Below are positions 14,557-56,632 of a stretch of 64,000 nucleotides of DNA, one piece after another; position 1 is the stretch's first letter; the number at the start of each line of letters is the position of its first letter. The stretch is from Oopsacas minuta (taxonomy: Eukaryota; Animalia; Porifera): positions 481,690 through 545,689 of the forward strand of contig JAKMXF010000354.1 of assembly GCA_024704765.1 (NCBI GenBank), written 5' to 3'. The notes below the pieces were generated by a model, which was not told the DNA's origin, made no database searches, and saw only the letters and a list, made by a program, of their open reading frames with translations. Position numbers and translations under genes: made by a program.

Positions 14557-14978
14557 TCTTTCTGGACAATCTATATTAGTGAATTGTGTTATAATAACTC
14601 AGTATTATATCAAAGATTGTATTGGATAGTATGACAAACAGGTTACAAAGTTCTTTTATAATTGCTTGCTGCCTCACCTCGTGGTTAGCACTACGTGTCC
14701 AGAATGCGTGCACAACACGTGACCATGATTGCACCATAATTTGTTATATTAGACAAATGGCTACGTATTATATTACTTATTTGCAATATTGTAATAGTAT
14801 TTAATCATTGCAATGCAGCAGTTCAGAGATATAAGAACTTTGATACAGCAACCATTATAAAAGATCTCTCCAACAACCTGCCCTAATTCAATAGTTCAAT
14901 TAACAATGCATAGATAATATATTAATATAGGGAATCTTTGTGTAGTATATGTATGTGTAAGACATAATGCTTATGGAA

Positions 14979-15431: not shown

Positions 15432-15979
15432 TTTTGCAGTTTGTTTACCGAACTGTGACTATATTTCGAATTTATATGAATGAAAATTATAACCATTTAA
15501 GTGCGTAAAGCCTAATACAGCTGGTTGTACGCATCTGAAGAAATGAGAAGCATTGAAAGGCAATCAAGTGTAGCCAAGTAAACGAGACAAGTTTTCTATA
15601 GAATAATAAGCAATTCATAAATATTATTAGGATAAGGAAATACATTTATGTCTAATATATTACATGATTAACCGAATACTGCATGGAAAATGTGTGATTT
15701 TATGACATCAAAAAGGTGCTAAATATCGTTTGTTCCTGGAATTGGTTAAAACGAAGTGGTACGATTTTAGTGTTCCTTTTCTTTACGAACTTAAAACCTC
15801 GGCCGTAATCGGTTAATCAATCAAAACCTTAATCAAAGAGCCAATAAAGTAACTTCTATTATATACGAAATAAATTTATTAAACAAAATTACGTAATGCA
15901 GCTTGCTACTAAATTCTGGACCGGGACTGGACTAGCTTGGATTGGACAAGGCAGAGCTGCTTATTAGAGCGAGTGGGGT

Positions 15980-16554
15980 CCCCTATATGTCTGTTGAGAG
16001 CAAGTCTCTAAGTATATTTCGATATTTCAACTATTTGTTTACTTTATATTCATAAAAACAACAATAAATTTACATATGAGAAATATGAAAATGCGAAATT
16101 TGGAATCAGCGTACTTGATTACCCCTATTGACTGTTGAGAGCAAGTCTCTAAGTATATTTCGATATTTCAACTATTTGTTTACTTTATATTCATAAAAAC
16201 AACAATAAATTTGCATATGCGAAACTTGAAAATGCGAAATTCAGAATCTGCTTACTTGATTACCCCTATTGACTGTTGAGAGCAAGTCTCTAAGTATATT
16301 TCGATATTTCAACTATTTGTTTACTTTATATTCATAAAAACAACAATAAATTTGCATATGCGAAACTTGAAAATGCGAAATTCAGAATCAGCTTACTTGA
16401 TTACCCCTATTGACTGTTGAGAGCAAGTCTCTATGTATAATTCGATATTTCAACTATTTGTTTACTTTATATTCATAAAACAACAATAAATTTACATATG
16501 AGAAATATGAAAATGCGAAATTTGGAATCAGCGTACTTGATTACCCCTATATGA
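15980..16554 (+). repeat. Tandem array of four near-identical 141-bp units (left arm)
   Basis: Units are directly alignable (CCCCTATTGACTGTTGAGAGCAAGTCTCTAAGTATATTTCG...) and differ by few substitutions. Confidence 0.95.
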
Positions 16555-31100: not shown

Positions 31101-34100
31101 AACCATCAAATACAGCTCATATATATTGAAATGACGCTATATGATCCATATTAGTATAAAGAAACTAATTTGATTAGAGACATCTGCGTATCAAATAGCA
31201 GAGCCAAATCTAGCTGGACACAATGTGAATAATATGAGTCATAATTGCAATAATGGCCAATAAAATAATAGTACAATGTAACAAGATACATGCGATTTTT
31301 GTGTTGGGAATGCTTGTTACAGTTTTTGGAAATTTGTACTGCTAAATGTATTATGCGTAACTATTTTAATTTCTAGCTCATTGGGATAAAATAAAATATT
31401 ATTAATGAACATTCTATAAATAGATTAATTGAGAGAATATTAAAACCTCACTTCCTATCTCTAGTTTCATTAAGGAAGAGAAAGTACGAATAAAACAAAA
31501 TTGAAGTCTGTTTTTATAACCACAGTAAGAAAGAGATACGACATAGCTTTCAATTCGTGTATAATTGCAATTTTGTGTGGTTCGATTAATTCCAGGTCAG
31601 ATAACAGTTATCAAACTGGTTACATGAAAATCACACTGGTATAAGTATAAATTGTGTAACGTATAATGATTGCCCAATTTTGGGTTAGTCTGTTTCAGAT
31701 ATTATTGGAATTTTCAATAATTATAATGTATAGAAGTTATTAATATTAAAATAATCAATTAACAAGAGAGATAGAAGACATTTTGCAAAGAAGAAATAAT
31801 TACATATCATACCAACCTGGATGGTACATAAAGTTTTAAGTGCTGAATTTAATTCTCTCTCCCCTAAGGCGATATCTGGCCCATTCTCCACCTACATCCA
31901 AACATATAAAATAGTTTGTGAAAGAAAGGGAAAAATAAAATTGTGTAATTACCATGATAAGTATATGATCTGAGATTTTAGCGTCCACTTTAGATTTAGC
32001 TAATGAGTAATGCTTTCTCTGTCTCCAACCTAAACAGCAAGAAGGTATAAAATTCTCTAATTAAAGTTGTCTAGATAAATTATGATATAGCAAGTACTTA
32101 TTAGCTTACCAAAATCTTTAAGTGATTCCACTATTTGCCATTTTGGCTCAGATCTTAGTTGCATTGAAACATACTCGAGAGCTTCTTCTACAGGACAATA
32201 CACATTACGGATATTGGATTATGTGAGTTTTACTTCAGATGTGAGGGTATAAAATATTTATTTATTATAAATAAACATAAATACGAATAATAGGAAAAGT
32301 GTTAAGATAATCAAGCCATTGTAAATATATGTAAGTAGGAAGTATAGCAAATCACATATACTTAGGTTAACACAAATTCTAAAGTAAGTATATACAAATT
32401 GAACGGTATACAAGTGTGTTAGTTTACCATGCATCCTCTCTAAGAAATGAGCTGGATCGAAGAAGCTTTGTACGATAAGAGCGTTGGCAATAGCAGGATC
32501 TTGTGTTATGTGGTCAATAAATGTCTAGAAATGAGATTAGCATTAATAATAGATATCAAAGCTCTCTATAATATATGACAACCTGTAATCTTAACTGTCT
32601 ATCTTGAATAAAACTTGGATCCATATTTCCAAAAAACTTTTTAGGAGGAAGAGGGTGTGTAATACCGAAAATCTATAATATATCTCAATAATTACTGGCA
32701 ATATTCGTCAAATTAGAACATTGCAAGATTGCTTATATATTATTCAACGATTACTTCGTAATCACAGCTGTTAACTAGGTACAAAATTCAATTATATTTC
32801 CTGCAATCAGATAGCAGGTGTATGTATATTAGAGAAAATTCATTAATAATTAACAGGAAATACGTAGATGTGTAATACATCTACAAATGATTAATAATAC
32901 TATTAGTAATGTATACCCCAGGCTGTCCCGGTAACTGAAAAATGATTAGTGTATTTAGTTTCACTGTTTCAGTGACATTATGATGCAACAGGAGTTAACA
33001 GAAGGTAGTGGCGTCTCCTGAATTACCAGGCAGATTACAATAAAAATTTTCAGAAATATACAATACCACACAACACTGTTACATATGTATTACATCAGAA
33101 ATAGTATTTGGGTACATTAATATCACTAAAACACATATGTAATATTATACACATAAATTACTAACTCAAGGTAAATTTGAGACGTACTATTAGTTTCTGA
33201 TTCAAGTCATTGAAATCGCTGTAACGTTTTAATATCTAGAAAAATAATGATATCATAACGGAAGTTATGGTAATGTATTGTAACTGAGTCATTTCTTCTA
33301 CAGAATTGGTATTAGAATCAGAACTGAAAGAGCAACACAAATACATTAAAATAATTTAGAATACATATATAGTATCTGGCGGAGTTTCAGTGTATTAACA
33401 AGTGATATATGTAATTATATTTAGTTAACTGGGATAAATTGATGAATTGATAATTATCAATATATTACAGAATAGTAATAGTTCAAGAATGGCAGATAAG
33501 AATCCAATAGTTCCAGAACAGATAGAAGATGATGACCTAATGGATGCATTCATACAAGCAGCGAACAGAGATTCTAATCGTCTAACAGAGGATAACTGGG
33601 AGAAAGAGATAGAGCAGGTTCCGTTATTTATGACTAAACCAATTGATCCTAGTCAGGAGCTGAGTCCTGAAATAGCTGCTATTCAATCACTCATTTACGA
33701 TAATGAAGATCCAAACGAATCTGCTAGAGCTTACAAAGATGAAGGAACAAAATTCTTCAAAAAGACTCAATACAAGAAAGCAATAGACTCATACAGTGAA
33801 GGATTGAAACATGCAGCTGATTCAGATCTGAGAGCTCAGCTGTTGAATAACAGAGCTGCATCGCAAGCTTATCTAGGTAACCACTTACTAATTAACTAAC
33901 ACACTTATGCTGTTATTTTCCTTTAATATCTACTAAAACATTGCTTGGCATTAAATTCTCAATTTAGCTTACAATGATTGAATATTACTTTCGTATTTCA
34001 AATAGAGTTGAGAAGAATGTAATCAATTTAGTTTGTATCATGCAGGTAACCACGGGAAGGCTCTTGAAGACGCTACAGAAGCGATTAGCTTGATGTCTGG

Positions 34101-38537: not shown

Positions 38538-41500
38538 TCAATCGGTTTTGAGAATATCCATAGTGCTTCCCAGCAATTGAATCAGTTGTTGCTCGTAATT
38601 CTCAAAGTTCCTCTTCATAATCTCCACGCAAGGCCCGAGGAGTCTTTCAAACGCTCCAATGTCAAGTGCTACAGAATTTATAAGATTGAAATTACGATAA
38701 CTAATAACTGAAATTTTGGAGAGAAATGTCCCTGTACAAAACTGTAGGCTTCTCCCTAAACTTTATGACATAAGAAATATGATTATTAATATTAATTTAT
38801 ACCTGCACACACTACTCTGCCTTGAGCATATACACTGGCTGCTCTAGGTTTGTTCACAAGAAGAGCAAGTTCTAAGAAAATAATTGACTACTTATTTGTA
38901 TACATCAACAATAACGAAACGAAACTCTAATTACAAACCTCCAAAATATCCCCCAACTGAGACAACCGATATATCTACCTCTTCATCACTACCTTCCTGT
39001 TTAAACATATAAATTGGGAAATACACTTTAAAATATTAAAATGATATAATTACCTTATCTCTCATACGAATGGCTACTTCACCTTCTACCATCAAATAGA
39101 ATTCAGTAGCTGTATCTCCCTACATGAATAGGACACAGTTAAACAAGTAAATAAATTGACGAGAAATATATAGATTTAATCGACCTGTTGGATTATAAGA
39201 TCTCCATCACTGTATTCCTCTCTACGTAGGGCATCTGCTATGTTCATACGTTCATAGTTCTAGATATTAGAATACGTAATACAATAGTAATTATTTATTA
39301 ATATCAGCTGATTATAATACTCACATCTAGTGATGATAGCATAGGGATTGAGACTAAGAATTTCTCATACATCTTTCTCTGTAAAAAAATATTCATTAAT
39401 AAAGAGTAGGGAAAATTTTATTATTACTCAATGATGTGTGTGTGTGTGTGTGTTGTATTGCGAGAACACAGTTATAAGAAATTTTTGCTTCTCCCAAGGG
39501 CGTTCTTATAAGCGATAACCACTGTACGTAGTATTCTTGTGTTTGTTTTACGAATACAATGGATAATCATAAATCATTGAAATGGTACCCATCTGTCGAA
39601 ATGAGATAAACTAGTTTATTTACGCTTTTAACTAAAAGGAGTGAAGAATAAACTTAAATCAGAATTTGATTATAAATTTGAGTAAACATCCAGGTGTACT
39701 TTCAAAGATGAATTGTATCTCGCGACCCCCGATTTGAGAAACACTGGTATAGAATATCTGGGCTGCAGAATGAATGTTTTTCCAATGTGAGAGAGGATTA
39801 TACATGAATTCATCGTAGTGAATGCATTCTTTTCATAAAAATGTATTGTTCTAGAAATACGCACTACATTCCTAACTTACGTAATATTTGATACACACAA
39901 TAGATACATATTAGAATAATTACCTTTTTAGAAGCAGATTCCATCACAATTCTCCTGAATGACATTCTGTCCTAAGTTATAAATTATATTATTATAGATT
40001 CTTAACAATAAGAATGAATAAATATCATAAAATTGTTCTATGGACACGATGCGAGTTCCATTCAATACATATACGTATCCACTTAATCGGGTCAGATGGC
40101 CTTGTCTAAATGTAATCCTTTTAAGCAGAGTCTACTGTATTAGTATAATATAATATATTGTACCAGAGCCCAGAGAGTTCCAGCTGTTTTAGCAACAACT
40201 GTTGCTTTCCTAAAGAAAAGAATATAATTTCAATTATGTCATTCAGATATCATTAAAACTAATAAAAAGTGTAATTATAACATACCTTGGTGTGTTGTAG
40301 AGGAGAGCAAGTTCTCCAAAACTACCTTCATTATCATAATGTGACACCTGTGTAGATATTATAACACTAATTCATAATACAAATGTTAATTTTAGATAAT
40401 TTTAAGTCAAATAATTCATCTCTCAATAGGAATTACAGACAAGAATAATGCTCTCACCAATTTAGAAGTACTCTTATCATTTATGTAGACTTCATAGAAT
40501 CCTCTATATGATAGGTAATTATAACAATACTATGAAGTTAAATATCTATCCAAACTTCACAATTTGCATCTACTACTCCTATAAACGGAGTTCACCATAT
40601 GCTCCCCTGAAAAATCTTAGTTTTGTCCGTGGGTCAAAGTGTAAAATCGAATTTGACTAGTCATCTATAGAATATTCAAATAACCTTACTTCTCAATAAT
40701 ATAGAAGAAATCTCCGTCATCTCCTTGCTCAATAAGATGGTCACCAACTGCTGCCTGTTATAAAACACACAATTAAAACTAAACATTACATAATCAGTGC
40801 ATAAATGTAAATTGTTCACAAACCGTTTTTTCAAACATTGCATCTAATACAAAAGTTTTCTGCTCCTAAAGTGATACAAAGAATAAATATAAAGAATACA
40901 CAAGTATATTAATAATTACTCACAGGCTCTAAATTCTTAAATAAGAAACAATTACTGAATGCTTCACATAGTCTCCCTCTCTGTTCATCTGACTTAGGAT
41001 AACAGATCTACCAAATTTTATAATATAAATATTTTCAATACAACCTATTAGATACAAACTTATCTGAACCTTTTGTAGTTCATCTTCGTCTGATGGTGAA
41101 AAAGGCTCAGCAAATACTAACAAATATATAAATACATAACACATTACTCTTATTAACGGGTAATTAAATTAATAGAGAATGCTATACTTTACAATACCTG
41201 AACATCTCCTGCCTCTGTCAAACCGAACAGGAGTGGCTGCTTCATCTGTACAATAAGAGCGTATTAGTTTAATATGAAAATATACATACATACGCAGTAT
41301 AATTTAGAAATATATCTATCACACAACCAAAGCTGTGGTATCCGTATGTGACCGTCTCCAGCATAATATATCTACTATTATACACACCGTACAAAAATTT
41401 AACATTCAACAGCTATCGATTCCCTCGAACGATAATCAAAATGAACAAGTGATAATGTTGAGAGTTCCGTGACAATACACAATACGTATATATTATACAA

Positions 41501-41831
41501 GTTAAAGCAATGAAAAGAGGTAATACACGAGATGTAACAGCTGTTACTCACCGTCATCATCTGATGGCAGGGTGTCCATATCTCCATTTGCATCCTTCAA
41601 TAAAGTAGTGGGATCTGCAGTGAGACCAAGGAGAGAGGAATTATTTTCTTCTGATACTTCCATTTGTCCTACTTCGTTACCATTTCCTTGTTTCTTCTCC
41701 TTCAAATCAGTGAAATAATAAGCTGCATAATCCACAAGATCTTCAGGCTTCTTTCTCAATACAGATAAGGCGAATTCTTGTAATAATTCATTCAACCCTT
41801 CAGGAATAGTGATAGGATAGTGATCAGACAT
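38538..41831 (-). CDS. PRKAR2: cAMP-dependent protein kinase type II regulatory subunit, 16 exons: 41552-41831, 41198-41245, 41070-41116, 40924-41007, 40824-40865, 40690-40754, 40458-40503, 40286-40347, 40164-40209, 39924-39971, 39325-39378, 39185-39259, 39054-39119, 38939-38996, 38803-38871, 38538-38668
   Basis: RII D/D domain ([29 protein letters not shown]), inhibitor site [26 protein letters not shown], phosphate-binding cassettes [11 protein letters not shown] and [14 protein letters not shown], and FERLLGPC. Splice phases are compatible. Confidence 0.95.
39435..39526. repeat. (TG)9 microsatellite followed by a MITE-like relic ending in CACTGTA
   Basis: TG run 39435-39452; inverted TTATAAGAA/TTCTTATAA motifs; CACTG-TA terminus. 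Confidence 0.5.
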
Positions 41832-43314
41832 CTCAATGAATAGACTATTATAACTACAAGTATTAGCTAAGCATATATCGTAATATGGAAGATTAGTATT
41901 AGAGGAAATGTACGTGGAAAGACTTACTTATGTATTTAGCTACAGACTGGGGTAACTTGGAGAGATTCTACACACGCATGAGTTTGATAAATAAATAAAT
42001 TTATGAAAACGAGGTATATTTGTGATTGAATAAAATAGGCAGAATAAGTATATATTATTGGGGAAATATTTGTGACATTTTAAGCCTAATGTTGTATGAA
42101 ATATTAACCAATCAGATATAAGTCTATATTTTAGATTAATGATTTCCATAATTATTTAACCTAGCTAGTAGGAGAAGTAATAATAGCAATCGGTGACGTT
42201 TACATTTGTGGGATGCTATATGGTTGCTAGACTCCTGCAACCTCTAGGTGTAGTTCAGAAAAATCAGAGAAAATGGGAATTTTTGCAATAAAAGTAGCTC
42301 ATTTCGTTTTTAGCAAATGTCCTTTTAATCAATAGTAGATATAAGAAAGTCGTGGCTTTTGGAATAACCTAACTAAATAAATAGACTCTTATCAGATGAT
42401 GTCAGCGAATAATTCTTTCGTTTAACATGTTTCCCCAAGAATTGAATGGTAATATTGGTAGAGATACCAGTGAGGGTTATGAGATGTTGCAATCAAATTC
42501 TACTGAGGTGAGGAGATCGGGATAATACAACAGTACACATCTCTAATTCCCAATACCAGTGGCTACATTTGCTAGGTTCTTTATTATTGGAAATATATAT
42601 ATATTACTGCTACAGTTTGTGGAAATAGCTGAAATGAAAGAATTATCGTTATCTTAATTGATAAAACAATGAGATTGCTCAATCATATTGTGACGTGAAT
42701 GGAGAACCATTGGAGACCAACAGCTGTTTTCTTTGGATTAACAATCACATCCTATGCCCCAATGGTGCATAAATTATCAAGTGGCCGTGGGTGCAAACAC
42801 TGTTCATTTGGCGCTTGGAATTGTATTTTCCTTTGGTCGGTGTCAATAAGGCTCATATATTGGCTATAGATACCAACCATTGGCTTTACTCAAAAATATG
42901 TCATCATACACTTATCTGAACCTTACACTGTGCTAACAAATTAAAAACTTTGTAAATAGGATATTAGTGAGAATTCATTAACATTTTTGGAGTAAGCTAA
43001 AAGACTGAGTAATATTAATAAATAATTTTCCTGAGTAAACTATTCATTCTATAAGTAATGGGTGAATTAAGACATTTATAATATCCTCAATAAGCAACAT
43101 TATTATGTAATTGGTAATATAATTGGGGACAAATCTCTAGAGAAATAAAGTAGTGATTACAACAATATGGCTATGGCACAACTCACTATAATTTTGAATA
43201 ATATTATAGTCTATTTTGAAAATAGGCTCAGGTGGTTCTGATAAAAGAAATAAATATAATTTGAGTAAAATATCTAACACAAATAAATATTCATTTAAAG
43301 ACAGGGCCTGTACG

Positions 43315-44508
43315 ATGAATGAATCGAATCGAGTGTTAATTCATAATTATGAAGAACTAGCTAAGCATACCACTGAGCTGAGCAAGGCACTGCTAACTTA
43401 TGCAGGTCTCCCTGTCCTGGCTATATCTGGGGTATTCTTGTCGGCTCTTTGGAGCTTCTATATGATACAGAGGATGAAAGTTGCGCGGAACGAATATCAA
43501 ATCGTGAAGAGGAACAGTGACGATCATATGAATTACGACATGACTACCAAGAGTTTCCGTATAATGTCTGTCTACTATAGCTTCATGATGATGATTTGTG
43601 TGTCAGAATTCTTCTGCTGTAGTCTTACCTTATTGGCAGGTGTATTATTCGTAACGAAGCCGTATATATCACCTACATGGGGAGTAAATGACAATGGTAC
43701 GGAACGATGTATTGCAAACATACTGTTGGATGTAAGTATGCGAGAAATATACTTGACCATTCCAATGCACGTACAGGTTACTTTGTACCTCACCATTTTG
43801 GGGCTAATTCGGATGCTAGTGTATTATCTCCGTGACTCATATCGTAATGAGCGATCGTTCGGCTGGTCTTATTTCAAGCTATATGGATTATTCATGTCCG
43901 GTAGGATCATGACGTATTTCTTCTTTGCGGGCGTATTACAAACACTACCTTTTGCGATAATTTGGTTTACGGTATTTATAATATACGAGTCCTTCTGTAT
44001 TATTTACGGTTGTGTGGGTCTACAACGTATACTTAGAAAGAGGTATGAACTAGCTATGGGGGACAGTCAGGGGGGAGAAGTTACCGAATGGATGTGGAGG
44101 TATATCAAATTTGCATTCTTCAATCCTGTGTTGAATATTTGTCTCACGCTCTTCTCTATCACAGAATTCCTGTTTGTATTCGGTTTCTTCTTCGCTATGC
44201 TTGTGAATACAGAATGTTGGATTCAGGTTGCATTTGGGTCTCAAGTTAAATTCAGTACAATGAGCGTAGAGAACAAACAAATGCTTGTACTGGTGTACCA
44301 AATCATGTACAATATTATAGCAGATTTTGCTTATATTGGAACGATGGTTATTTTGGGAATTCCTTTCATTATGTACAGTTTAATTATCAGCATCAATATC
44401 GTGTTGCGTGCTTGCAGGAAAAAACGTATTTATGGAGACAATAGCTGGCTTGCTGAAAGATTGCTGAATGCGCCCCTCAAGGAGCGACGACCGAAAGAAA
44501 TATTCTAG
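43315..44508 (+). CDS. Hypothetical multi-pass (about 7TM, GPCR-like) membrane protein
   Basis: Long ORF with about seven hydrophobic segments, extracellular Cys residues and a basic C-tail; likely start ATG 43315; no family-defining motif recognised. Confidence 0.65.
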   Translation: MNESNRVLIHNYEELAKHTTELSKALLTYAGLPVLAISGVFLSALWSFYMIQRMKVARNEYQIVKRNSDDHMNYDMTTKSFRIMSVYYSFMMMICVSEFFCCSLTLLAGVLFVTKPYISPTWGVNDNGTERCIANILLDVSMREIYLTIPMHVQVTLYLTILGLIRMLVYYLRDSYRNERSFGWSYFKLYGLFMSGRIMTYFFFAGVLQTLPFAIIWFTVFIIYESFCIIYGCVGLQRILRKRYELAMGDSQGGEVTEWMWRYIKFAFFNPVLNICLTLFSITEFLFVFGFFFAMLVNTECWIQVAFGSQVKFSTMSVENKQMLVLVYQIMYNIIADFAYIGTMVILGIPFIMYSLIISINIVLRACRKKRIYGDNSWLAERLLNAPLKERRPKEIF

Positions 44509-44921
44509 CAATGAATTGCTCATAAAATTAGCTTATGACTGTAAGTGGATCCCACACCATATATTTGTTGAGATTTTGTAATACAAACTACGTAGTTATA
44601 ATATATTACGTGAAATTAACATTTCGAGGTTTGATTAATTAATTATTGGATGTGTAAATAGTATAATTATCTGATATTTTCACTTTTTTCTGTATGTACA
44701 AATATGTAAACCCCCAATATGCATTAGTTGCTTGTAGTCTAACACAGATCCCAGGCCATTAGTATAGCCATGGGACCGGTGCATCTCTTTACAGGTTACG
44801 AAGCTCTGAGGAACAGACAAATCGCAAAACTGTAGCCGTATCTTCCAATAATTCGACAGAAATTAAAACTGTTAATTTCGATTAGAATTACTGCAACAGT
44901 ACGAATCAGTTTCTCGCCATT

Positions 44922-45334
44922 AAGTACAAGCTACCTGATCACAAGTGATTGCTATCAGTGAGGAGTGTTTCAAATGCCTGAAGCATTATTCAATCCCTCC
45001 CTCGTCGGATCAAAACAGGATGGTAACCATGTTGCTATTAACAAATCAATCCTGAAGAGTGACAAGGACATTCAACACTATTTATGTAATAATATTGTGT
45101 TAGAAGGAGGTAATACTATGTTCCCTGGAATAGAGGAGAGATTGTACACTGAGTTATCTACACTCACTCCTAATATAAAATCTATCAAGATAATAGCACC
45201 GCATAACAGGAAATACAGTGCATAGATTGGAGGCTCTATGTTAGCTTCATCAAAGGCTATTGAGAAGATGTACATTACAAAACAAATGTTATGATCAATA
45301 TGGCCCAAAAATTATTCTTAGAAAATGTATATAA
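44922..45334 (+). pseudogene. Actin-like 3' pseudogene fragment
   Basis: KYKLPD, PEALFNPS, NIVLEGGNTMFPGIEERL, IKIIAP..RKYSA*IGGS and RKC. The conserved Trp is replaced by TAG at 45223-45225, there are frameshifts, and the 5' two-thirds are absent. Confidence 0.8.
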
Positions 45335-45571
45335 TTTGATGAAATCATTTTACTATTACTGTCTTGTAAGTCACAGAATTTGTTGTTAAACATTTGGTTG
45401 AAATGTATCAGAATTATAGGATTTGACAAAGAACTGTCATACAATAAATATATGAGTATTTATTCTAGAATTAATTAACTCCATCTACAGCAATAAAATC
45501 AAACTACTATTTACCATGTAATAACGGAAAAGTGATTAGAAAGTTGCTTAGTTTAAATTGTAACCATTCAG

Positions 45572-47446
45572 TCATAAATTTTGTTTGATGTTTTCTAACT
45601 TGTGTTTAAGTTGTGTGTATAGTTGTGGGTCTGTGTGATACACAGCTGCCATTCTCCTCTCCAATGCTAGAGTAGGATGTTGTATTAACTCTTGTTTATG
45701 TGAGTTTACAGTCTGTAATACTTCCTTCATTTTACGTTCAAACTCTTGTAAGCGTTCCTCTAAGTAATGTCTACCCTCTGGTCCATTTACTAATTGTCCT
45801 GCTTGTTCCTCGAACTCTTTTATAGTTTCCGTAGCTTGCTTTAATTTGTGCTCTGTATTCAAGACTAATGCTAAATTTGATTTCTTTATACAATCACTAC
45901 GTTGTTCTGCTACTCTCATCTTAATTTGGAGATTACTGATCGCTTCTCTTAAAACTTCATAAGTAGGAAATCTACCAGATTTCACTTTATAAAGTATCAT
46001 GCTATAACAGAATAATCATGAACTTGCCTTGATTTATTCTCTAGTCCCATAAGTTTATAGAGACGGTTAAGTGAGCGGTCAGAAGATGGGATAATGAGGC
46101 GTGGCGCATCCTCGGTAAATCCTATATCGCTCTCTCTCGCTTCTCTAGAATATTCTTCCAACAGACGTGATGTTTCACTAGTCTCATCAAACATTGATTT
46201 CACAGATTGTATACACTGATGCAATTCCTCCATTTTCTTATTCTCCACCTCATAAATATATGAGACCAACAAATACATACTACTCTGATATTTCACATAT
46301 TCCATGAACCTTTCCTGTCGATTTATTACTTCCTTTTGCTGAGCTATTCTATGTTTCATCTCTCCTTCTAATATTTCACCTATTTCACTCATAGCTATCT
46401 CTTCCACCTGTCTGGGTATATCTTTACACTCTTCTTTGAATTTATCCTCTGCTTGTAAGATCTCATCATGTGTTGATACAGTTAGAATTCTTATTGCCTT
46501 TTCATCTCCTTCCTTTTTAAGTTTTTCAGCTTTATCTTTGAACTCTGTCAAACATTCACTCTGAGATTTCATTTTATTCAATTCTAGTTCTAATCTCATT
46601 ACCTTCATTAATCCCAGAGACTTCATAGATTGTGCCTACCAGTGCATAATAATAATAATAATAATAATATAATATCTGGTATAGCAAATGAATAACCTGT
46701 AGTATTTTAGGATCTAAGTTAACCTCGTGTCTCGGTCTTCCTCCACTCAAACGTACTGCTGCTTCTTCAGGTGACATCTCTCTCATTTCTTTCAAATCCA
46801 TTGAGAAAGCTTTTTTACAGAAATTATTTAGCTCATTTGTGTACTCATTCTGAGCTTCAAAGAAAGAGTCCATGGAGACTTGGCAGAAGAATAGAGGCGG
46901 AGATTTAGTCTCAGGATCTAGTCGTTCATTGAGCTGTTTCACTAGTTCCAAGAGAGATGAGGCCATCTGATTGAAATTTTCAACCTGAACTGCTAATACT
47001 GCCATTGCTTTATTCGTTCTATCTATAGCGTGTTCCTTCTGTAACTCCAGGTTAGCTTTCTCAGCTTTCATCTCTATAACTTGTTTCTCTAGACATTTCT
47101 TAATATTGAGCAGATAAGCTCTACGTTTGTTAGCACGAACTATTTTCTCTTGTTGTTCTCTCTTCTCTTCCTCTGTCTCAGGTGGAGGCAGGTAGGAGTG
47201 GTGTAGGATCCGATCCAAGTCCTCTTTAGTGGGAATGGGCTCAGGAAGATGAGCTAGTAGGGGTATGTCCCCCCGCTTCACAAGGAGAGGGAAGTGAGAA
47301 CATAGAGTGTTTAGAAACTGTATGCATCCTGCTGGCATACAAGGATCTTCATCACAACACTCTGCTAAACGCTCTGCTATACTCATCAGCTCAGATTGAT
47401 CTGGAGACAATGTTTCACGGAGAGATTCCAATACTTTTCTGTCCAT
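45572..47446 (-). CDS. HAUS3: HAUS augmin-like complex subunit 3, exons 46697-47446, 46028-46635 and 45572-46001 (or 45572-45971)
   Basis: FFCQVSMDSFFEAQNEYTNELNNFCKKAF, SDRSLNRLYKLMGLEN and LALERRMAAVYHTDP match recalled HAUS3 segments. A 61-nt GT-AG intron and an AG|GCAAGT GC donor join the three ORF fragments in frame. Confidence 0.75.
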
Positions 47447-47534
47447 TTGGAATCTTAAAATAGATGCAATTATCCTTGATTAAAAGATGTTTGTTTCTTA
47501 AAGAGTAACCAAAATATGCATATAGTATATATGG

Positions 47535-47669
47535 TAGATTCCGGATTTAAGAACCCCTAGGGAGTAGCAATACATGTTCTTATAACCGGCAAAATATACA
47601 AGAATATATGAGCTGACGAACCGTTTACCAGAGGATGTTGCTTATATCCGATAACCGCCATCCACTGTA
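47535..47669. repeat. MITE-like relic ending in CACTGTA
   Basis: CCGGATTTAAGAAC..GTTCTTATAACCGG inverted motifs and a terminal CCACTGTA, similar to the relic at 39465-39526. Confidence 0.4.
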
Positions 47670-47798
47670 TATTTATTACAATTTCGGAATATAGCCCAAA
47701 AAAAGGCTATTAACCCCGCATATAATACAATATGTATATTTAATATTGACATTATTGAAGTGAAATGCATTGTAAATAATCTATAAATTCAAGTTACA

Positions 47799-49568
47799 TT
47801 ATATTGTATTAAACTCGTGTAGTAGAGTTCTCTTGTAAGGCTGTACTGGAATGTCTGTATATTGTTCATCAGTTCTAACAGTTTTAGTACTAACAACCTT
47901 ATTCTTGTATTCTAGCATTAATTCTTTCCATTGGTATATACCAGGGTATTTATCTCTGTCAATATCTATTTCTTCCCCCAAAGCATCAATAGCTCTGTAG
48001 TCAGACTTACAAGGCAAGTCTCCGCATAGAAATTTCTGTTGTGAGCTAATTGATAAATTTTGTAATTCATCTTCTAAGGTAGATTCCTTGCTTTTGGTTG
48101 TAATAAATCGTTTCTGTATATATTCTTCTAGTAATTGCTTACCGTTATCATCAGTTAAATCACAATACTCGCCAAGGAAATCCCAATACTCCCTCCAGCC
48201 TACGTTGAAGTTCTTAGCCAGCTGTCTGCCATCATACTCCAATCCTTTCTCGGGATCTAGACGTCTGTCTCGTGAGGATTTGTAGAGTGGACTCTTCATA
48301 CCGGGAGGACTTTTCCAATCTTTGTAGAACTTATTCGCTTTCTCTTGATTGAGAGGTCCTGCCCATGCTCGACACAGGAGCTGCTCCTTGATAGGAGTTC
48401 CATCTCTCTCTTCAGTATCCATGGAAACCATTTTATCAGAGTGTCTGTGTACTGGTTTTCCTAGAATTGGTGGAGTGGCATTATCTGGAGATCTGTAGAC
48501 AGGAACAAAGTAGTTCTCTGAAAATAGATTTTGTATCTGTCGTTTACGTTCAGGATATTTACGGCTACAAATAACTTCAAAGGGTATCTGCCCTTCTTTG
48601 TTAGGTTTTGCTATTTCAATAAATGATTGTGTTATGAGAGCAGCTGTAACTCTAACCGATCCGAACTTACAAGCAAAATGTAATGGAGTTTCTCCCAATA
48701 GAGCATCACCTGTATTGACATAGCTGGACAGACAGTTTGTACGTCTGGAGCTACGTATAGACAGCTGATCTTTGGGATAGAGTAGCTCCCATAATTGTTC
48801 ATTGTTCAAATGCTTTAGAATTATTTTAGCAGCAATAGCATTATCACTGAGTGCTGCTATATGCAAAGCATTATAATGACACCTTATCTGTAGAATAGTA
48901 GGGACATCACTAGAGGTTACTAAGAGTTTGGGATTAGAAGCGATCAGCTGTTCTAACCTATCTGAATCTGTTCTCTCTATAGCTAGTTTGATTTGATTAA
49001 GATCTTGCTGTTTAGGTGTCTTGTAATCAGATGGATCTGCGTCTGGAGCGGGCTTGCTTGATGAGCTGGAGAAACGCTGTAGACTAAATTCAAGAGCTTC
49101 CTCCTTATTTTTACAAACCTTGAATCGTACATCTTTGTAACGACTGTGTATAGACGTTAGTTCTGACTTTGATTCACAGAAGTACTGTTCAGATAAAGGA
49201 GGCTCAATATCTTCAACTGCAGATAAGTTTATGCCGTAGAGTATTGACTTTGTAGGAAATTGTTTGTCAACTTTTGGTTGTTCAGTGTCTTTGGAAATTG
49301 TAAGAGAATCAAGTTCATACGTCTTTATAAGTTTGTTTATCATAATTGAACGAGTAAAATCATTGATTGGGATTTCTATATTTACTCCACGGTTTACTAA
49401 TCTCTGTTTCAACTCTTCATTTGATATTTCTGCAAAGTTAGGGAGACTATCTGTATCTGTAGTAGTAGCAGTTACTTTCTTATCTGGTGGAATATCCATA
49501 AACTTTTGATGTAACCTGTTAGAGTCTAAGGCTTTGAAGTACAGCATAAAAGTATGACAATCGATCAT
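47799..49568 (-). CDS. ANKLE2: Ankyrin repeat and LEM domain-containing protein 2
   Basis: LEM domain (ISNEELKQRL..IPINDFTRSIMINKL), RFKVCKNKEEALEF, ankyrin repeats (NALHIAA, GETPLHFACKFG), YFVPVYRS, EKGLEYDGRQLA and WREYWDFL. Confidence 0.92.
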   Translation of the reverse strand: MIDCHTFMLYFKALDSNRLHQKFMDIPPDKKVTATTTDTDSLPNFAEISNEELKQRLVNRGVNIEIPINDFTRSIMINKLIKTYELDSLTISKDTEQPKVDKQFPTKSILYGINLSAVEDIEPPLSEQYFCESKSELTSIHSRYKDVRFKVCKNKEEALEFSLQRFSSSSSKPAPDADPSDYKTPKQQDLNQIKLAIERTDSDRLEQLIASNPKLLVTSSDVPTILQIRCHYNALHIAALSDNAIAAKIILKHLNNEQLWELLYPKDQLSIRSSRRTNCLSSYVNTGDALLGETPLHFACKFGSVRVTAALITQSFIEIAKPNKEGQIPFEVICSRKYPERKRQIQNLFSENYFVPVYRSPDNATPPILGKPVHRHSDKMVSMDTEERDGTPIKEQLLCRAWAGPLNQEKANKFYKDWKSPPGMKSPLYKSSRDRRLDPEKGLEYDGRQLAKNFNVGWREYWDFLGEYCDLTDDNGKQLLEEYIQKRFITTKSKESTLEDELQNLSISSQQKFLCGDLPCKSDYRAIDALGEEIDIDRDKYPGIYQWKELMLEYKNKVVSTKTVRTDEQYTDIPVQPYKRTLLHEFNTI

Positions 49569-49832
49569 CTTTCAAAGGGAATTAAGTAAATGATATCGCC
49601 ATATAAAATTTGGATTTCGAAATTGTTTAAATTAGTATAATTTTATTCCCCATTATTCTCACACTTATGACTCATCATATTTTACGAATAACCCAAGATT
49701 TAGAATAATTTCCACTTCCAAATGACTACAAGGATATTACCTAATAATAAATTACCAAACTAAACTATGCTATACAACAACAATATTTATCAAATAATCA
49801 TAAAGAGCTCTTTTAGATTATATAAAAGATAA

Positions 49833-50414
49833 TCAACTCTTAACATTTGTGTATAGCTTGAAGATAAACATACCAAATATATCAATTCCCAGATTGCCTT
49901 TAGAATCAAACAATTCAGCAATAGAACAAGATTTAGATTCACATTTTACAAATTTCGTCATAGCGTTCTGATAGGTAATAGTAACAGTGTAATTATGATC
50001 AAACCTCTTGAGTACTGTAGCAATCTTTACAGTGGAGTTAGTAATGAATCCAGCTTGATCTCGCTCAGTACCAGAGTACACATAACTCTTCTCAAATAAT
50101 AATGAGAAGATAGAGAGGGCAAGCATCAGTAGTGCATAACCAACAACACAAATTATAAGAACTGTAAATGATTTAGGATAACCTGTGAAATAATCGTATG
50201 TAAAAGCTACCACAGCTAACAGCACTGCCATTGCTGACATTATTATCTTAGCATCAGTCAGCTGATTCCTTTCCTGGAAGTTTAAACCCTTATTGAATAT
50301 CTTCTTTATTACGTCATCAAGTCCATGTTTCACACCTGTCGTATCCCATTTATCAAGTTTGATCGGTTTATCAATAAGGTTTTGGAAAAAATCAGAATTA
50401 CGAGATCGAGACAT
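49833..50414 (-). CDS. SPCS2: Signal peptidase complex subunit 2
   Basis: KPIKLDKWDTTGVKHGLDD, two TM helices, KRFDHNY and FDSKG. Likely ATG at 50414. Confidence 0.9.
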   Translation of the reverse strand: MSRSRNSDFFQNLIDKPIKLDKWDTTGVKHGLDDVIKKIFNKGLNFQERNQLTDAKIIMSAMAVLLAVVAFTYDYFTGYPKSFTVLIICVVGYALLMLALSIFSLLFEKSYVYSGTERDQAGFITNSTVKIATVLKRFDHNYTVTITYQNAMTKFVKCESKSCSIAELFDSKGNLGIDIFGMFIFKLYTNVKS

Positions 50415-51659
50415 GAATAACTCTAACGAGAGACTGGTTCTTATTTTCAAGAACAAAAGAAATTCTAGCTTAGCAATAATTATTTGAATAATGGGTTTTG
50501 TCGGGGAAAAATACGTATTTCGAGCCACTACTTGCTTCGGATTATTTACAAAACCTTCTTAAACATTGCTTAGTATCGTCATAGAAAGTGGTGTTACCTA
50601 ATTTTTGTGTGCGATTATCCCAAGGGCTACCAAATTAAAATATCTTCTCCTCCAATAAATTAAATAAAGCTATATCATTCTAACAATTCCCATTTTTAGT
50701 TTATGCTGAGCTAATGGTAGGACACTATGGCTCTAGTAGCAGCTATCCACGTGTGTCGCTTAAGAGAGTATGGCACAATTGGAGCAACATTCCTAAACAA
50801 ATTAGTAGAAAACTATTATTTCGTTTTGGACTGATAGAAGTTCAGGAATAATAATAGCCACGTATCCGTGTTAAAATTGTAATACGTATAGTTATGTGAT
50901 ATAATAATATTATATTTGCGTATTGAACCTTACTGCTAGTCACTTCGTCTCTAGAATACAAGTAGAATGAATAGCAACCTTCCACCACTCCAAGATAACA
51001 TAAGTGAATTTGCTTACTGCCAAATGGCTCTTTATCTTGTTAGATTTATGGCTCCACACTGGTACATATTTATATGTATTTCAGGAATAATTATTTATTA
51101 GATCTTATCATCAGGCCATTAAAAATTTATTCTACACAGAAATAAACAAATAATGTTTCGGACCACATTTTGTTTCAATGTAGATTAGTCAATTATCTAT
51201 ATTCCCTGATTTTTGAAATAAAATATCCAAATATGTAGAAATAGTATAGTACCGTATTTCCATGAATAATCGAGAGGAATACGCATCAATTGACTGCAAC
51301 AAATTAGGATTAGTTTCCAAAAATTATTTGTCTTTTCAAATTGTAAAAAATTATACGAAAAAATGGAAAGAATATGCGCCCATGCGGTTATTCAGGTAAA
51401 AAGAATATTAGTTTAATGATTAAGATTAGTTGAAAAACGTAAGATAAACTACAGCGAGAAATGAGAATTGAAGAAAAAAAGCAATAAAAATTGCATAAAA
51501 TATTTAGATGATAAATTCTGCGTTGAATGATTTGACTAATAAGTTGGGCCTTACAGCCAATAGAAATAAATCAAATTAGAATTGAAAGCAGCGCTTTAAG
51601 AGAGCAAGTATACTAATGTCCCGCTACAAATCTCGATATAAATTCTTCAAGTGCTAGTA

Positions 51660-53325
51660 CTATGACTGAGAGGATGGAATGATCTTATTATGCACCCTGG
51701 ATATGTGAGTAGTGAGCACGTACTTCCGGTAGAAAGATTTGAAACAGTAGTGGCATTGGAAGGGCCGCTCACCGCTATGCACTATTAAGTGACGTTTGAG
51801 TCCAGTATTAGACTTGTAAGACCTCTCACAGATGGAGCAATGGAATTTACGTTCTGACAGATCGGTGGTAGTGTTCTTGCTGTTGAGTGTAGGTTGGCTT
51901 GCTGTAGCGAAGTAAGTGGGAGGAGAGCTTGCTGAGTTGGAGGCATCTGTCTGTTGGATGTGAGAAGTAGGGAGAATGGAGTATACTTGAGGTCTATCTG
52001 GTAGACTTTGTACTGAATTAGACGAGGGATCTATTAGAGAGTTAGGGAGACTCAGGAAGGCCTGAGTATTAGGGCGAGGGTGAGGCTTGAATACACCTCG
52101 ACATGATTTACACTGGAAATGGTTTTTATTAGGTGTATGTGGATGCATGTACTCACTAGTCAGGGATAGGTTAGAGAAATTATTCTTGAGTGGAGGAGTG
52201 AAGGGAGAACTGTGTGGAGAGTTCCCTTCTCCAACTACATGCACACTCATAGGGGAATTGAGTGTAGTAGTAGGTGTGTTATTGGGTGTACTATGCTGAC
52301 TATTTGTAGTGAGAGCTATTGAACTCTGTAACGTGAAGTTGATTGGAAGATTAGGAATAGAAGTGTTGAGAACTGGAGAACTCATTGGTAGTATATTCGA
52401 ACTGTTTGTACTAGATGTTACATTTAATAAACTGTCTTGACCTAAGAAGGTAAATGGTGGACTGGTAGGTAGAGTATGAGAAGAGTTGATTACATGTGAG
52501 TTATTGTCTGATTTCACAATATTATTCGAGTTTAGGATAGTAGGGCTATTTGTCTTTGTGGGAACGGCTCGGTTGCTACAAGGAAGGTCAGTCAAATGAG
52601 AATCTTCATCATCTGATGGAAAATATTTGTTTGGGGGACTATGAAATGCTTCTGGGTGTATACTCACTTGATATACGTTTGCTAGAAAAGAAATTTTGTT
52701 ATTTTCTGTAGCTAAACCTGAACAGAATAATTGTGAGCAATATTTTCAGAATTGCAGTTATTATGCAAGTAAAGTATCGAACAAAAACTTTATAAGAATA
52801 ATATACGCCTAGTATTCATAAAGTTTGTAAAATAGAATTACAACATTATTAGCAATTTATATCCGGGAAAATATTAAATTTTCATTTCAATTTGCCAAAC
52901 TTATTGAATACAGTAACTTCTGTATATTTGTTTGTTACGTAAATAATACGTATATGTACGTTGTGAATGATAAAATGTGAATAAAAGTGGAATTACAACT
53001 TGTGCAGAAAGCATTTGCCTTAAATAATATTGCATGTAGTAAAATCCAGCAGATTCGTAAATTCACAGAATTGAGACTCACCTGTATCAGAAACTACTTC
53101 TCCATCTCCACATATTTCATCTGAGTCTTCTGAAGATCTGAATATAGAATTCACCCTCACGGTTTCATACAAGACCCTGTCCTCCTTTGATTGTAAGTGC
53201 ATGTAATATTCAACTGCAAAGTCCACATAGTTGGAGGGCCGTGCTTTCAATGCAGATACCACGAACTCCTGCACCATATCGTGTAATATTAGCGGAATTT
53301 CCATCACAAATTTCTTGGTGGCCAT
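51660..53325 (-). CDS. RII-type dimerization/docking domain + C2H2 zinc-finger protein (gene A), exons 53082-53325 and 51660-52717, 433 aa
   Basis: Exon 1 encodes IPLILHDMVQEFVVSALKARPSNYVDFAVEYY and ends G|GTGAGT (phase 1). The TTCAG acceptor at 52718 (alternative at 52682) joins in frame to an S/T/P-rich ORF ending in two C2H2 fingers with an HSGERPF linker. Confidence 0.75.
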
Positions 53326-55663
53326 TTATAAATCAGACTTCACAAGAATCAACTTGGTCTACTGCAACATGAAATATGTACTAGGTGGAGAATATGAACA
53401 CAGTATTAGAAAGACTCCTATATATGCCCAGTTTATGGATTGTATGCATAAATGGCGGCAATATGAGAGTAGCTGAGGTTAGGAGGAATGGCGTAATCGA
53501 AACTGTTAGTGTCTCAAATAAGCTGCAGAAGCTTGTGCTAGTGCCTTTGAAGTAAAATGGTAGAATTGTGTAATTATAATTGATTCTGTTGTCATGAGAA
53601 TGTATGTTTGTACCATCAAAATATGCTGGTATACTAAAAAGTAAGGATTCACCCGCAAATACGCTCTCACAAGTGCTAATGAGAAGTTATGAAAATGCAA
53701 TAGTTGGTTATATTTTGACACGCTGACTTGGGTGGTCGCGCGCGTGTCGTTTCGAAAGTGGAAAGTAATGGAGAAAAGCTTCTACTGACAATTAATGAAT
53801 TCTTTTCTTTCTCCATTTGCTGTTTTTCATTTAGGAATCAATCTGACTGGCATAGAAGAATCCCGCTTTAGGTTAATGCCAGACGATTCTGAATTTCTGT
53901 ATATTCAAGGAAAGAAAGCTGCAACATTGTGTTACCTGGAATGTGGAATCAATCCTGATACTTTGATTTATTGAAATAATGTAGTTCATTCCATATTGCT
54001 AAAATTAGAAAATCTAAAGCCATTTAAGAAAAGAGAAATTTTTACTAAAAAGTGTTGTAGGCGAAATTGCACTAGTATTTCGTGAATTACGTCAAAACAA
54101 CCAAAGCATCAACACGCAATCACTTACATGTTCTAGAAAGTAAACAAACTATTTATAAATCATATCAAATATGTCATGTCGCAATCAATAACTAGAGTGA
54201 TTGCTGCCCAAATTTCATTTATTAACAATTAAGTAATAATGTCTGAGAATTACTGTCACATAGTTAGCATGATATTACTAAGATGAACATGATAAAAAAA
54301 TTAAATATTTATATGCTGTCAGTGTCAAAGTGTGTATTTGTATAATCTATTGAAGTAATTAGGAGAATGTTTCTCAACATCTCACGAGCTATTCCTACAA
54401 TTATAGTTATTGGGAGCCCTCGTTCATCATCTAAGGTAATTAAACGAAAGATGAAGTGTCATTTTACATGGTATCTGTCAAGTATGAATGAACACAGGCA
54501 GCTTTGAGCAAAGCGCGAATAATGGTTAGAGGTGAATATTGAAACTTGTCTATTAACTTATCGATATTGTTATGCTATCTTTGACCACGAATGTTCACGT
54601 TGGGATCAAATTGTTCCTGATCTTTAACAAAATCATGTGACCACAATAAGTTGCATAATCACAGGCGTAGTTGAAAATCCCCCTAACTATAAGACCCATA
54701 TATCGTTGTAAAGTAATGTCGGAAATTTCGAATCACATGAGTAATCTCAATGATATTTCTAATGATAGGATTTTTCCATCATCATTAGGGCGATAACAAA
54801 CTTAAAGACAACTCTACATGTGTCGGCGGGCGGCATTTCACTAGCATCAGCTCATTATTTAAAATTATCATATACGTAATCAAAATTTCTTGATTCATGG
54901 CAAATATAATACACGGAAAGTCAAATTTGATTTGATGCCGTACATGACAGTTTAAACAGTAACGACGAAATATAACTCATCTCTATATGTATTTTTCTTT
55001 CAATATTATATATTTCATGTGTGGCTGCATAAAAATAAGATAACGGTGGACAATACAATATGCCACAACTAGTAAGTAGACAACAACAGCAGTATTTTAT
55101 ACTTTGATCAGAAAACTAAAATTTAGTTCAGAAATCGTCGTAGAATTTTATCAGAAAAAGGAATAATTAATAAAGGTTTCGATATCCCTAATCCAAATTA
55201 TACTTTGAGTTGAATTTTGATCAGAAAACGCTACATATAGGGGCTGGTTTCAGCTAATCCATAGAAATTCAACAACTCCGAAATATCTTGAGACACTATT
55301 GCAATAAGTAAGGGATAGGGATATTCCTTTCCAATCTCCATATCTAATTTCGATACTTCTGATCAGAGTTCTAATTTTCTGATTCCTCCGCGAAGCAGGT
55401 ACATCCCGGTATCGAGTTGAGAAGCGACCAAGCAAGCTTATTTTGCTTGTTCAGATACCAATTAATAAGACAACGAAACAATTAATAATATCCGAAATAT
55501 TCGATATAATCAATTCAAAAATACCAAGCTAAGCTATTGCATCATTCTCCAGTTTAGCTAAATCATATTTTCAGATCAACTTCAGAATGTATGATTCGGA
55601 TTTGAGGCCTTCAACTAACTCTAATCTTTCTTCTACATATTTTTCGAAAAGTGATTTTGGTTC

Positions 55664-56632
55664 CTACTGAGAGGCCTGCACATGTGTATAGTAATGGAGA
55701 CGTAGAGAAGAGAAGTGTTTGAACATGATATCGCATTCAAGACATTTGAACAGTGTGACTCTCCCATTAGGTTGAGAAATAATATTCTTTGTGATGATAG
55801 GTTGAGGAATAATATTGTTTGTGATGATAGGTTGAGGTGTGGGAGACTGTGTCTTATCCACAGCAATGTGTACGATATGTTGAGAATAATGGGTATGGTA
55901 CTCAAGTGCATCTCTGAATATGATACCACAGCATTTACATACTAATCCTTCCTCGAGGTTAGTGGAACAAGCGTGATTGAAGTGCTGAGATAATTGGGGA
56001 TGTCCGTTGTAAGTTTTTGTAGTGAAAGGGCGAGCTGAGGCAGGGGGAAGAGAATTGAGGACAAGTTTATGATGAGGTGGGGTACCAGGAGTGCTACACG
56101 GAAGATGGAGTGAATTATTAGACTCGGATTTCTCCGGTATTGATGGTGTTGTAACAAGTGAGCTAACCTCGTGAGAAATAGCAGGGTCTGTTACGAACAC
56201 GATTGCTCGGTTAGAGGACTGGTAGAGAGGTGTCTCACAGGTGCGGTACAGGAGTGTTCCTGGAGGAACAGACGCCTCATCACTCACAGAAGTCAGCTGA
56301 TAAATACCGTAAGGTGGAGATGGAGTTGTGAAGTGATGAGGCTGAGGAGAACTACTTATAAAATCACTATTCTGAGAGATATAACTCTGTTCAGGAACTG
56401 TTTGTTGTTTACTTGCGATACTGCTACATACATGCTCCCTGGGAGTACCAACTGTAGGACTCATTCTCCTCTTCCGTGTACATTCATTCCTATTAGCCCC
56501 TTCCTTCAACTTCTTATGATACTCAACTGCATAATCTATGTAATTATCAGGCCGTTCACATAGCGCTGAAGTTATGAAATCTTGAATCATATCTTGCAAT
56601 GCAGTTGGTAGAAGAATGGGAAATTCACACAT
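55664..56632 (-). CDS. RII-type dimerization/docking domain + C2H2 zinc-finger protein (gene B), single ORF of 322 aa
   Basis: LPTALQDMIQDFITSALCERPDNYIDYAVEYH at the N-terminus, an S/P/T-rich linker, and fingers CKCC..FRDALEYHTHYSQH and FKCLEC..FKHFSSLRLHYYTH. Confidence 0.85.
   Translation of the reverse strand: MCEFPILLPTALQDMIQDFITSALCERPDNYIDYAVEYHKKLKEGANRNECTRKRRMSPTVGTPREHVCSSIASKQQTVPEQSYISQNSDFISSSPQPHHFTTPSPPYGIYQLTSVSDEASVPPGTLLYRTCETPLYQSSNRAIVFVTDPAISHEVSSLVTTPSIPEKSESNNSLHLPCSTPGTPPHHKLVLNSLPPASARPFTTKTYNGHPQLSQHFNHACSTNLEEGLVCKCCGIIFRDALEYHTHYSQHIVHIAVDKTQSPTPQPIITNNIIPQPIITKNIISQPNGRVTLFKCLECDIMFKHFSSLRLHYYTHVQASQ
55768..55828. repeat. 30-bp tandem duplication inside gene B (PQPIITNNII/PQPIITKNII)
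   Basis: AATAATATT(C/G)TTTGTGATGATAGGTTGAGG occurs twice in tandem. Confidence 0.85.

Follow-up and report, generated by a model that had tools for sequence, protein, structure and literature searches.

In a 64,000-nt stretch of the genome of the glass sponge Oopsacas minuta (hereafter the window), we identified two neighbouring genes, A and B, which both encode a zinc-finger protein headed by a dimerisation and docking (D/D) domain. The D/D is of the type carried by the type II regulatory subunit (RII) of protein kinase A (PKA), and the RII gene itself lies on the same strand of the window. A and B belong to an old D/D-C2H2 family that is confined to glass sponges (Hexactinellida) as far as public data go. 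We consider it fairly probable that the D/D goes back to the RII lineage of glass sponges, having arisen when its first coding exon was duplicated locally, and that it serves as the dimerisation module of the finger protein.

The three D/D-bearing genes are laid out as follows, with positions counted from the start of the window.

38538..41831, minus strand: PKA type II regulatory subunit (RII) gene, a multi-exon coding sequence with its ATG at 41831 and its stop codon at 38540-38538.
41552..41831, minus strand: RII exon 1, encoding the D/D (about 41691-41831) and an acidic linker, from reading of the sequence.
41198..41245, minus strand: RII exon 2 with the RGRRCS inhibitor/autophosphorylation site, acceptor tacag|AT and donor CAG|GT, from reading of the sequence.
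51660-53325, minus strand: gene A, two exons.
53082..53325, minus strand: gene A exon 1, encoding the D/D (about 53182-53325) and an S/D/E-rich linker, from a spliced contig and the public model P0164.
52682..53081, minus strand: gene A intron, 400 nt, GT..AG, from the spliced contig with its joint at 52681/53082.
51660..52681, minus strand: gene A exon 2, encoding an S/T/P-rich region, a degenerate CxxC element (52071-52121) and two C2H2 fingers (Pfam zf-C2H2 and zf-H2C2_2).
51777-51839 and 51690-51755, minus strand: tandem C2H2 fingers of gene A with an SGERP linker between them, followed by the stop codon at 51660-51662.
55664..56632, minus strand: gene B, a single-exon coding sequence of 322 aa in one uninterrupted open reading frame (ORF).
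56501-56632, minus strand: gene B D/D, followed by a basic stretch, a conserved middle block and the fingers.
55877-55939 and 55682-55744, minus strand: two separated C2H2 fingers of gene B, with finger sets conserved in orthologues.

A sequence-only reading of this DNA had noted three RII-type D/D N-termini on the minus strand, and all three were recovered (41831-41552, 53325-53082 and 56632-55664); tblastn found no fourth D/D copy within the window. The RII gene was complete. Its exons were placed across 38538..41831 by tblastn with the full-length RII-like proteins P0118 and P0125, and they encode the RRCS inhibitor site, which lies in exon 2, and two cyclic nucleotide-binding (cNMP-binding) domains bearing FGELAL-type motifs before the reading frame closes with a stop codon. 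Pfam RIIa matched RII exon 1 with 34.4 bits, and the orthologous exon-1 ORFs (P0152 and P0158-P0163) were 64-86% identical to it. RII exon 1 measures 280 nt (93 codons plus one base) and gene A exon 1 measures 244 nt; as the sequence-only reading had stated, both encode a D/D plus an acidic linker and both end in a phase-1 donor, G|GTGAGT. Its statement that gene B has no intron between the D/D and the fingers also held, since the 322-aa ORF is uninterrupted and the same single ORF was seen in eight gene B orthologues.

The fingers of A and B show the canonical C-x2-C-x12-H-x3-4-H pattern. The gene A finger pair had a mean identity of 87% in the orthologue alignment, and its inter-finger linker reads SGERP in the window and TGERP in locus L002. 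Neither gene gave a Pfam cNMP_binding match; both carry C2H2 fingers instead and do not have the architecture of an RII subunit. Gene A was searched exon by exon. Its exon-2 product was 100% identical to the NCBI entry 'Zinc finger protein [Oopsacas minuta]' (P0164, 421 aa), the joined 421-aa protein being this public annotation, and 'Zinc finger protein' is all that the public record calls it.

The type of the N-terminal domain was assessed with a profile built from 14 gene A and gene B D/D segments (alignment A3). Against solved structures this A/B profile matched the RIIalpha D/D with an E-value of 1.5e-8, RIIbeta with 1.4e-3 and RIalpha with 0.57, and no DPY-30, SPA17, ropporin or CABYR chain of the PDB was matched at E<=10. 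A grouping of the A/B domains with the R2D2 or DPY30 families, which the sequence-only reading had named as refuting it, was thus not seen. Pfam RIIa recognised 13 of the 14 segments (best E 4e-5). An AlphaFold2 (AF2) model of gene B residues 1-50, built on a 33-row alignment, reached a predicted local distance difference test score (pLDDT) of 80 and formed a helix-turn-helix with helices at residues 10-26 and 31-48. When this model was searched against the PDB with Foldseek, the top 30 matches were all RIIalpha D/D (template modelling score 0.63-0.75, probability 0.96-1.00), with radial-spoke RIIa proteins, RI and DPY-30 ranking below them; the E-values were only 0.03-0.3 because the domain has just 50 residues. 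Some results weigh against this assignment. The gene A D/D of the window scored below the Pfam gathering cut-off (20.2 vs 22.4 bits), full-length gene B alone gave no RIIa match in Pfam, and the AF2 model of full-length gene B was of low confidence (pLDDT 43) and was therefore excluded from the fold search. Individual Pfam scores at or below the gathering threshold might also be expected if the A/B N-termini were chance helical look-alikes rather than true D/D domains. We give this explanation next to no credence: the match of the A/B profile to RIIalpha, the thirty Foldseek matches and the next 150 matches of the profile among 1.84 billion proteins, which are RIIa-type, effectively refute it. 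Because of the profile match to RIIalpha, the Pfam RIIa matches and the Foldseek ranking, the N-terminal domain of A and B is, by sequence and model, RII-type and not of the R2D2 or DPY-30 type.

The profile search covered 1.84 billion representative proteins. Five clusters of the A/B family scored 100-110 bits, followed by a gap, and all other single domains scored at most 47 bits. The window's own RII exon 1 was the second-best match outside the family (46.2 bits after per-domain rescoring). Some 150 further matches were RIIa-type, those that could be classified being RII subunits, RII first-exon ORFs and double-RIIa/IQ proteins, and no C2H2 fingers were found in any non-family match of this search. 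This gap and the lack of finger carriers outside the family argue that the family is specific to glass sponges. Gene B had eight full-length relatives with 37-53% identity, one of which (P0008) came from the transcriptome of the glass sponge Vazella pourtalesii, and gene A orthologues were found in the same assemblies as the gene B relatives. Outside the family, the gene A exon-2 region gave only generic finger matches, and an ESM Atlas look-alike search with gene B returned only generic zinc-finger clusters. The lineage specificity proposed earlier therefore holds at the level of glass sponges, but the event is neither recent nor species-specific: other assemblies from glass sponges, six at the least, have both A and B in conserved synteny, and the family is also present in the Vazella transcriptome. 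Full-text literature searches found no description of an RIIa-C2H2 or D/D-zinc-finger fusion, and the 18 human members in the inventory of the D/D superfamily include none with zinc fingers (PMC8339350). Reuse of the D/D outside PKA is already known; what A and B add to the non-PKA D/D proteins is a new architecture.

Among the double-RIIa/IQ proteins, P0013, P0019, P0025, P0056, P0064, P0074, P0088 and P0144 carry two tandem N-terminal RIIa domains plus IQ motifs. Some of these proteins are 2600-5000 aa long, and their second D/D also has the AVEYF motif.

The D/D was the best conserved part of gene B, with a mean pairwise identity of 88%, compared with 60-71% for the fingers and 27-41% for the linkers. 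Across species, the nonsynonymous divergence (dN) of the D/D was 0.01-0.24, synonymous sites were near saturation, and the ratio of nonsynonymous to synonymous divergence (dN/dS) was 0.01-0.09 where it could be estimated; these comparisons place the D/D under strong purifying selection in glass sponges. In RIIalpha, the segment ahead of the first helix is required for AKAP binding and dispensable for dimerisation. The corresponding segment of gene B, E-F-P-I-x-I-P, is nearly invariant among orthologues that are 37-53% identical overall. RIIalpha residues Ile3, Ile5, Thr10 and Gln14 contact AKAPs (PMC3682517), and the residues aligned with them in A/B are I/M, I/L, H/Q and an invariant Q, respectively. 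Because the residue types of the groove are kept and the pre-helix N-terminus is near-invariant, the A/B dimer is also likely to be a docking site for a partner protein's amphipathic helix, a more speculative proposal than dimerisation. That A and B could compete with RII for AKAPs, as the sequence-only reading put forward, is hypothetical.

Two other parts of gene B were examined. The middle block (residues 110-163, about 56144-56305) is 70% conserved with PPGTLLYRTC and VVFVTDPAIS-type motifs; it had no family match in Pfam or Atlas, and two short strands were predicted in it with low confidence. Directly after the D/D, at residues about 52-62 (about 56447-56479), there is a basic K/R-R-x-S-P stretch, which was also seen in P0002-P0008 but is not conserved in every orthologue. 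It resembles a nuclear localisation signal as well as the RRxS inhibitor site of RII, but has Pro at +1.

We further studied how A, B and RII are related. Within the window, the D/D domains of A and B were 46% identical along an alignment of 46 aa, and comparisons between species gave 46-56%, whereas their identity to the RII D/D was 33-37% in the three-way alignment of the window (30-45% across species). Maximum-likelihood trees were computed from 50 columns, as a quick tree of 162 rows and a careful tree of 149 rows. A and B formed one clade with support 100/100, in line with the earlier claim that they are nearer to each other than to RII. In both trees the sister of this clade was exactly the eight glass-sponge RII domains, and the A/B D/D stood apart from the double-RIIa/IQ proteins. 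The stem branch of A+B was long (1.9-2.9 changes per site). Moreover, the motif [FY]-P-[IV]-x-[IL]-P was present in 10/10 gene B domains and 8/8 glass-sponge RII domains, but in 0/137 of the other best D/D domains; a relaxed form of the motif also covers 7/7 gene A domains.

The genes between A and RII were identified through the Pfam families of their orthologues in loci L001-L011, and the actin-like remnant by tblastn.

49833-50528, minus strand: SPC25 (ORF and Pfam of orthologues).
47799-49568, minus strand: ANKLE2-like gene (ORF and Pfam of orthologues).
45572-47446, minus strand: HAUS3 (ORF and Pfam of orthologues).
44938-45322, plus strand: actin-like remnant (tblastn).
43216-44508, plus strand: multi-pass membrane protein (ORF and Pfam of orthologues).

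Four other assemblies share a common gene order: RabGAP-TBC, SelO, NHL, B, A, SPC25, ANKLE2, HAUS3, (GT10), actin, membrane protein, TOP2, RII and, further on, a Wheel/TPR gene. Orthologues of RII exon 1 and gene B lay on the same contig in 6/6 other assemblies (7/7 with O. minuta), one of these contigs being 40 kb long. The starts of gene B and RII are 14.8 kb apart in the window, and two of the other assemblies gave 20.6 and 28 kb. The O. minuta genome has 61 Mb (PMC10280926), and in a genome of that size a gene would fall by chance no more than 28 kb from RII with odds of about 1 in 1000. The proposal to examine synteny in related sponges was thus answered by B-A-...-RII linkage over 15-28 kb in three measured assemblies. 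Widespread orthologues with unrelated synteny, which would have spoken for another origin, were not observed; the orthologues were restricted to glass sponges and their synteny was conserved. An apparent lack of linkage to RII in another species, where TOP2 follows the membrane-protein gene, was rejected, as RII adjoins the far side of TOP2.

Several side observations were made on this block. Measured against the other four assemblies, O. minuta is missing TOP2 and GT10 from the block (window 43216-45322 versus L003, L005 and L011), and the actin-like fragment at 44938-45322 (plus strand) is a C-terminal piece corresponding to residues 250-371 of a 374-aa actin; the missing genes and the remnant fit local gene loss in a compact genome. 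Downstream of RII, a Wheel-domain/TPR gene (33447-34728, plus strand) is syntenic with L008-L011, so the block reaches past RII. In the most divergent species (assembly ERZ20067936, loci L002 and L005), the orientation of gene B is reversed with respect to gene A, and the actin gene is separated from the membrane-protein gene by an ORF for a hAT-family transposase (850 aa).

These results have to be set against a number of points that weigh against a local copy of the RII exon. The support for glass-sponge RII as the sister of A+B was weak, with a Shimodaira-Hasegawa-like approximate likelihood ratio (SH-aLRT) of 74 in the quick tree, and an ultrafast bootstrap (UFBoot) of 44 and SH-aLRT of 69 in the careful tree. 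In one quick tree, from which long rows had been removed, a different RII-like group took the sister position; with fifty columns, the D/D trees cannot decide the sister of A+B. The linkers of gene A exon 1 and RII exon 1 had no detectable homology (hhalign E 0.74-0.76), having in common only their richness in acidic residues and an S-D that immediately precedes the donor, and copying of the whole exon therefore rests on phase and position only. Agreement in phase is weak evidence, since its prior is 1 in 3, and the G|GTGAGT donor simply follows the consensus. Synteny covers the entire block between RabGAP-TBC and Wheel/TPR, so that conserved linkage tells the age of the arrangement without proving that the copy was made locally. 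Descent of A and B from one another by tandem duplication of the whole gene is likewise no more than plausible: BLASTP of gene A exon 2 against gene B was not significant, and outside the D/D, hhalign of A against B gave a probability of 35%, driven by the finger and CxxC elements, with the degenerate CxxC of A paired to finger 1 of B and the first canonical finger of A paired to the last finger of B. The phylogeny of D/D domains that the sequence-only reading had asked for was accordingly clear on the A+B clade, and it put RII as sister in the best trees, but only at 44/69. Its central proposal, a duplication of RII exon 1, is partly supported by the RII-type D/D, the weakly supported sister position in the best trees, the motif, the same-strand linkage and the intron phase; the expected linker homology was not detected.

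The same weak support and unrelated linkers would be compatible with an RII-type D/D taken from an older or dispersed RIIa gene, or from a processed RII transcript, with the linkage to RII being coincidental or secondary. Five to seven unrelated genes stand between A and RII, and a cDNA-derived copy could explain both the intronless gene B and its R-R-x-S-P stretch, which resembles the inhibitor site in RII exon 2. However, R-R-x-S-P is not conserved in all gene B orthologues, gene A has its phase-1 intron at the equivalent place, and the N-terminal motif is common to A/B and glass-sponge RII only. Moreover, same-strand linkage over 15-28 kb in three assemblies, together with the shared contigs, would arise by chance only at about 1 in 1000. 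We regard such a non-local origin as rather unlikely.

Local duplication of the RII exon, which we prefer, would have taken place in the stem lineage of glass sponges, where copying of the RII 5' coding exon most likely provided the D/D. The copy would have been joined to a zinc-finger coding region via a phase-1 intron, kept in gene A and gone in gene B, and the fused D/D-finger gene would have been duplicated afterwards to give A and B; the order in which A came first and B arose by intron loss is parsimonious. RII, the putative donor, would then have kept its place on that strand, 15-28 kb downstream. The D/D is expected to form a dimer as an antiparallel X-type four-helix bundle, so that A and B may be homodimeric and possibly also A/B heterodimeric, with a role like that of SCAN, BTB or ZAD in other C2H2 families.

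Expression of both genes was observed in public data. Four public runs from one sample contain the window. For one of these, X4, the type is not on record, and from the exon-shaped depth and a spliced contig we infer that it is RNA; the O. minuta genome study generated RNA-seq in the same project (PMC10280926). An X4 contig joins 52681 to 53082 at a depth of 1234 and skips 400 nt with CT..AC ends on the plus strand, and this joint agrees exactly with the predicted gene A intron and with the public 421-aa model P0164. X4 depth was about 1600-3400 over the gene A exons, dropping from about 2200-3400 there to 58 over its intron, 6000-16000 over the gene B ORF, and about 100-300 over intergenic DNA (about 104 flanking gene B). 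Genes A and B are thus both expressed in the sampled tissue. The match of an X4 contig stops at 53382 (minus strand, upstream of the gene A ATG), directly at an AG, and the contig continues upstream with the unmatched letters AAAAAACTTAC (minus strand), which suggest a further exon of the 5' untranslated region or a leader sequence for gene A.

What the D/D does beyond pairing its own protein was weighed from the same data. A and B might be transcription factors that dock onto the amphipathic-helix scaffolds of PKA or pair with RII, but we hold this to be distinctly unlikely. That the D/D is a dimerisation module only, like SCAN, BTB or ZAD, with AKAP docking lost and no link to PKA scaffolds, is a possibility of some weight, though one we lean against. 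The least that this fold does is dimerise, and A/B have Ile or Val in the position aligned with RIIalpha Thr17, whose exchange in T17W makes RIIalpha anchoring-defective (PMC3682517). Some non-PKA D/D proteins bind AKAPs weakly on their own, as SPA17 does (PMC8339350); few AKAP helices may predate vertebrates, and one O. minuta orthologue was judged non-anchoring (PMC12203939). Loss of docking does not sit well with the Gln aligned with RIIalpha Gln14, which is invariant, nor with the pre-helix E-F-P-I-x-I-P, which is invariant or nearly so among such divergent orthologues.

Heterodimerisation of the A/B D/D with RII, as SPA17 does with ROPN1L, would either tether the PKA holoenzyme to chromatin or titrate RII dimers, and A and B would in that case be regulators of PKA instead of factors acting on their own. 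The A/B D/D is closest to the species' own RII, both genes are expressed in the sampled tissue, and mixed D/D pairs that create AKAP-binding modules do exist (PMC8339350). Nevertheless, a D/D identity of just 30-45% and the long stem of A+B, at 1.9-2.9 changes per site, suggest a diverged interface, and we think this pairing very unlikely.

Compared with known systems, A and B are closest to the PKA RII D/D itself (Pfam RIIa PF02197; 2HWN, 2IZX and 4ZP3). They have the same two-helix pattern with a predicted helix-turn-helix, hydrophobic residues at the Ile3 and Ile5 positions and Gln at the Gln14 position, and the domain has the same extreme N-terminal place ahead of a flexible acidic linker. 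RII differs in having an inhibitor site and cNMP-binding domains where A and B have C2H2 fingers, so the latter are not kinase regulators. The R2D2 proteins (SPA17, ROPN1/ROPN1L and CABYR) likewise use an RII-like D/D outside PKA for dimerisation and docking, but they are mostly ciliary or sperm proteins with no zinc fingers in the 18-member human inventory (PMC8339350); their solved chains were unmatched by the A/B profile, and A/B are restricted to glass sponges. The BTB/POZ, SCAN and ZAD C2H2 families are likewise built with a domain for self-association at the N-terminus, fingers at the C-terminus and a disordered linker between them, and they have undergone lineage-specific expansion as A/B have. 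However, their domains are unrelated in fold and origin, whereas the A/B domain is most likely from a kinase regulatory subunit and may dock helices. AKAP95/AKAP8 are zinc-finger nuclear proteins that bind RII and so, as A/B would, tie zinc-finger proteins to the RII D/D-AKAP system (PMC12203939), but with opposite polarity, since AKAP95 carries the amphipathic helix that binds the D/D and A/B carry the D/D itself.

The D/D is the defining handle that positions PKA in cells. In A and B it heads a zinc-finger family, which gives the D/D superfamily a new architecture and adds a putative new N-terminal self-association domain to the C2H2 repertoire. Because the likely donor adjoins in every glass-sponge genome examined, the family lets domain shuffling be traced unusually well in an early-branching animal, and it raises the testable question of whether a non-kinase sponge D/D protein binds AKAP-type helices. 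Glass-sponge tissue is largely syncytial, and we know of no other animal in which PKA signalling islands are physically linked to gene regulation. If A and B did dock onto PKA scaffolds or pair with RII, they would provide a direct physical link from cAMP/PKA signalling islands to gene regulation in glass sponges.

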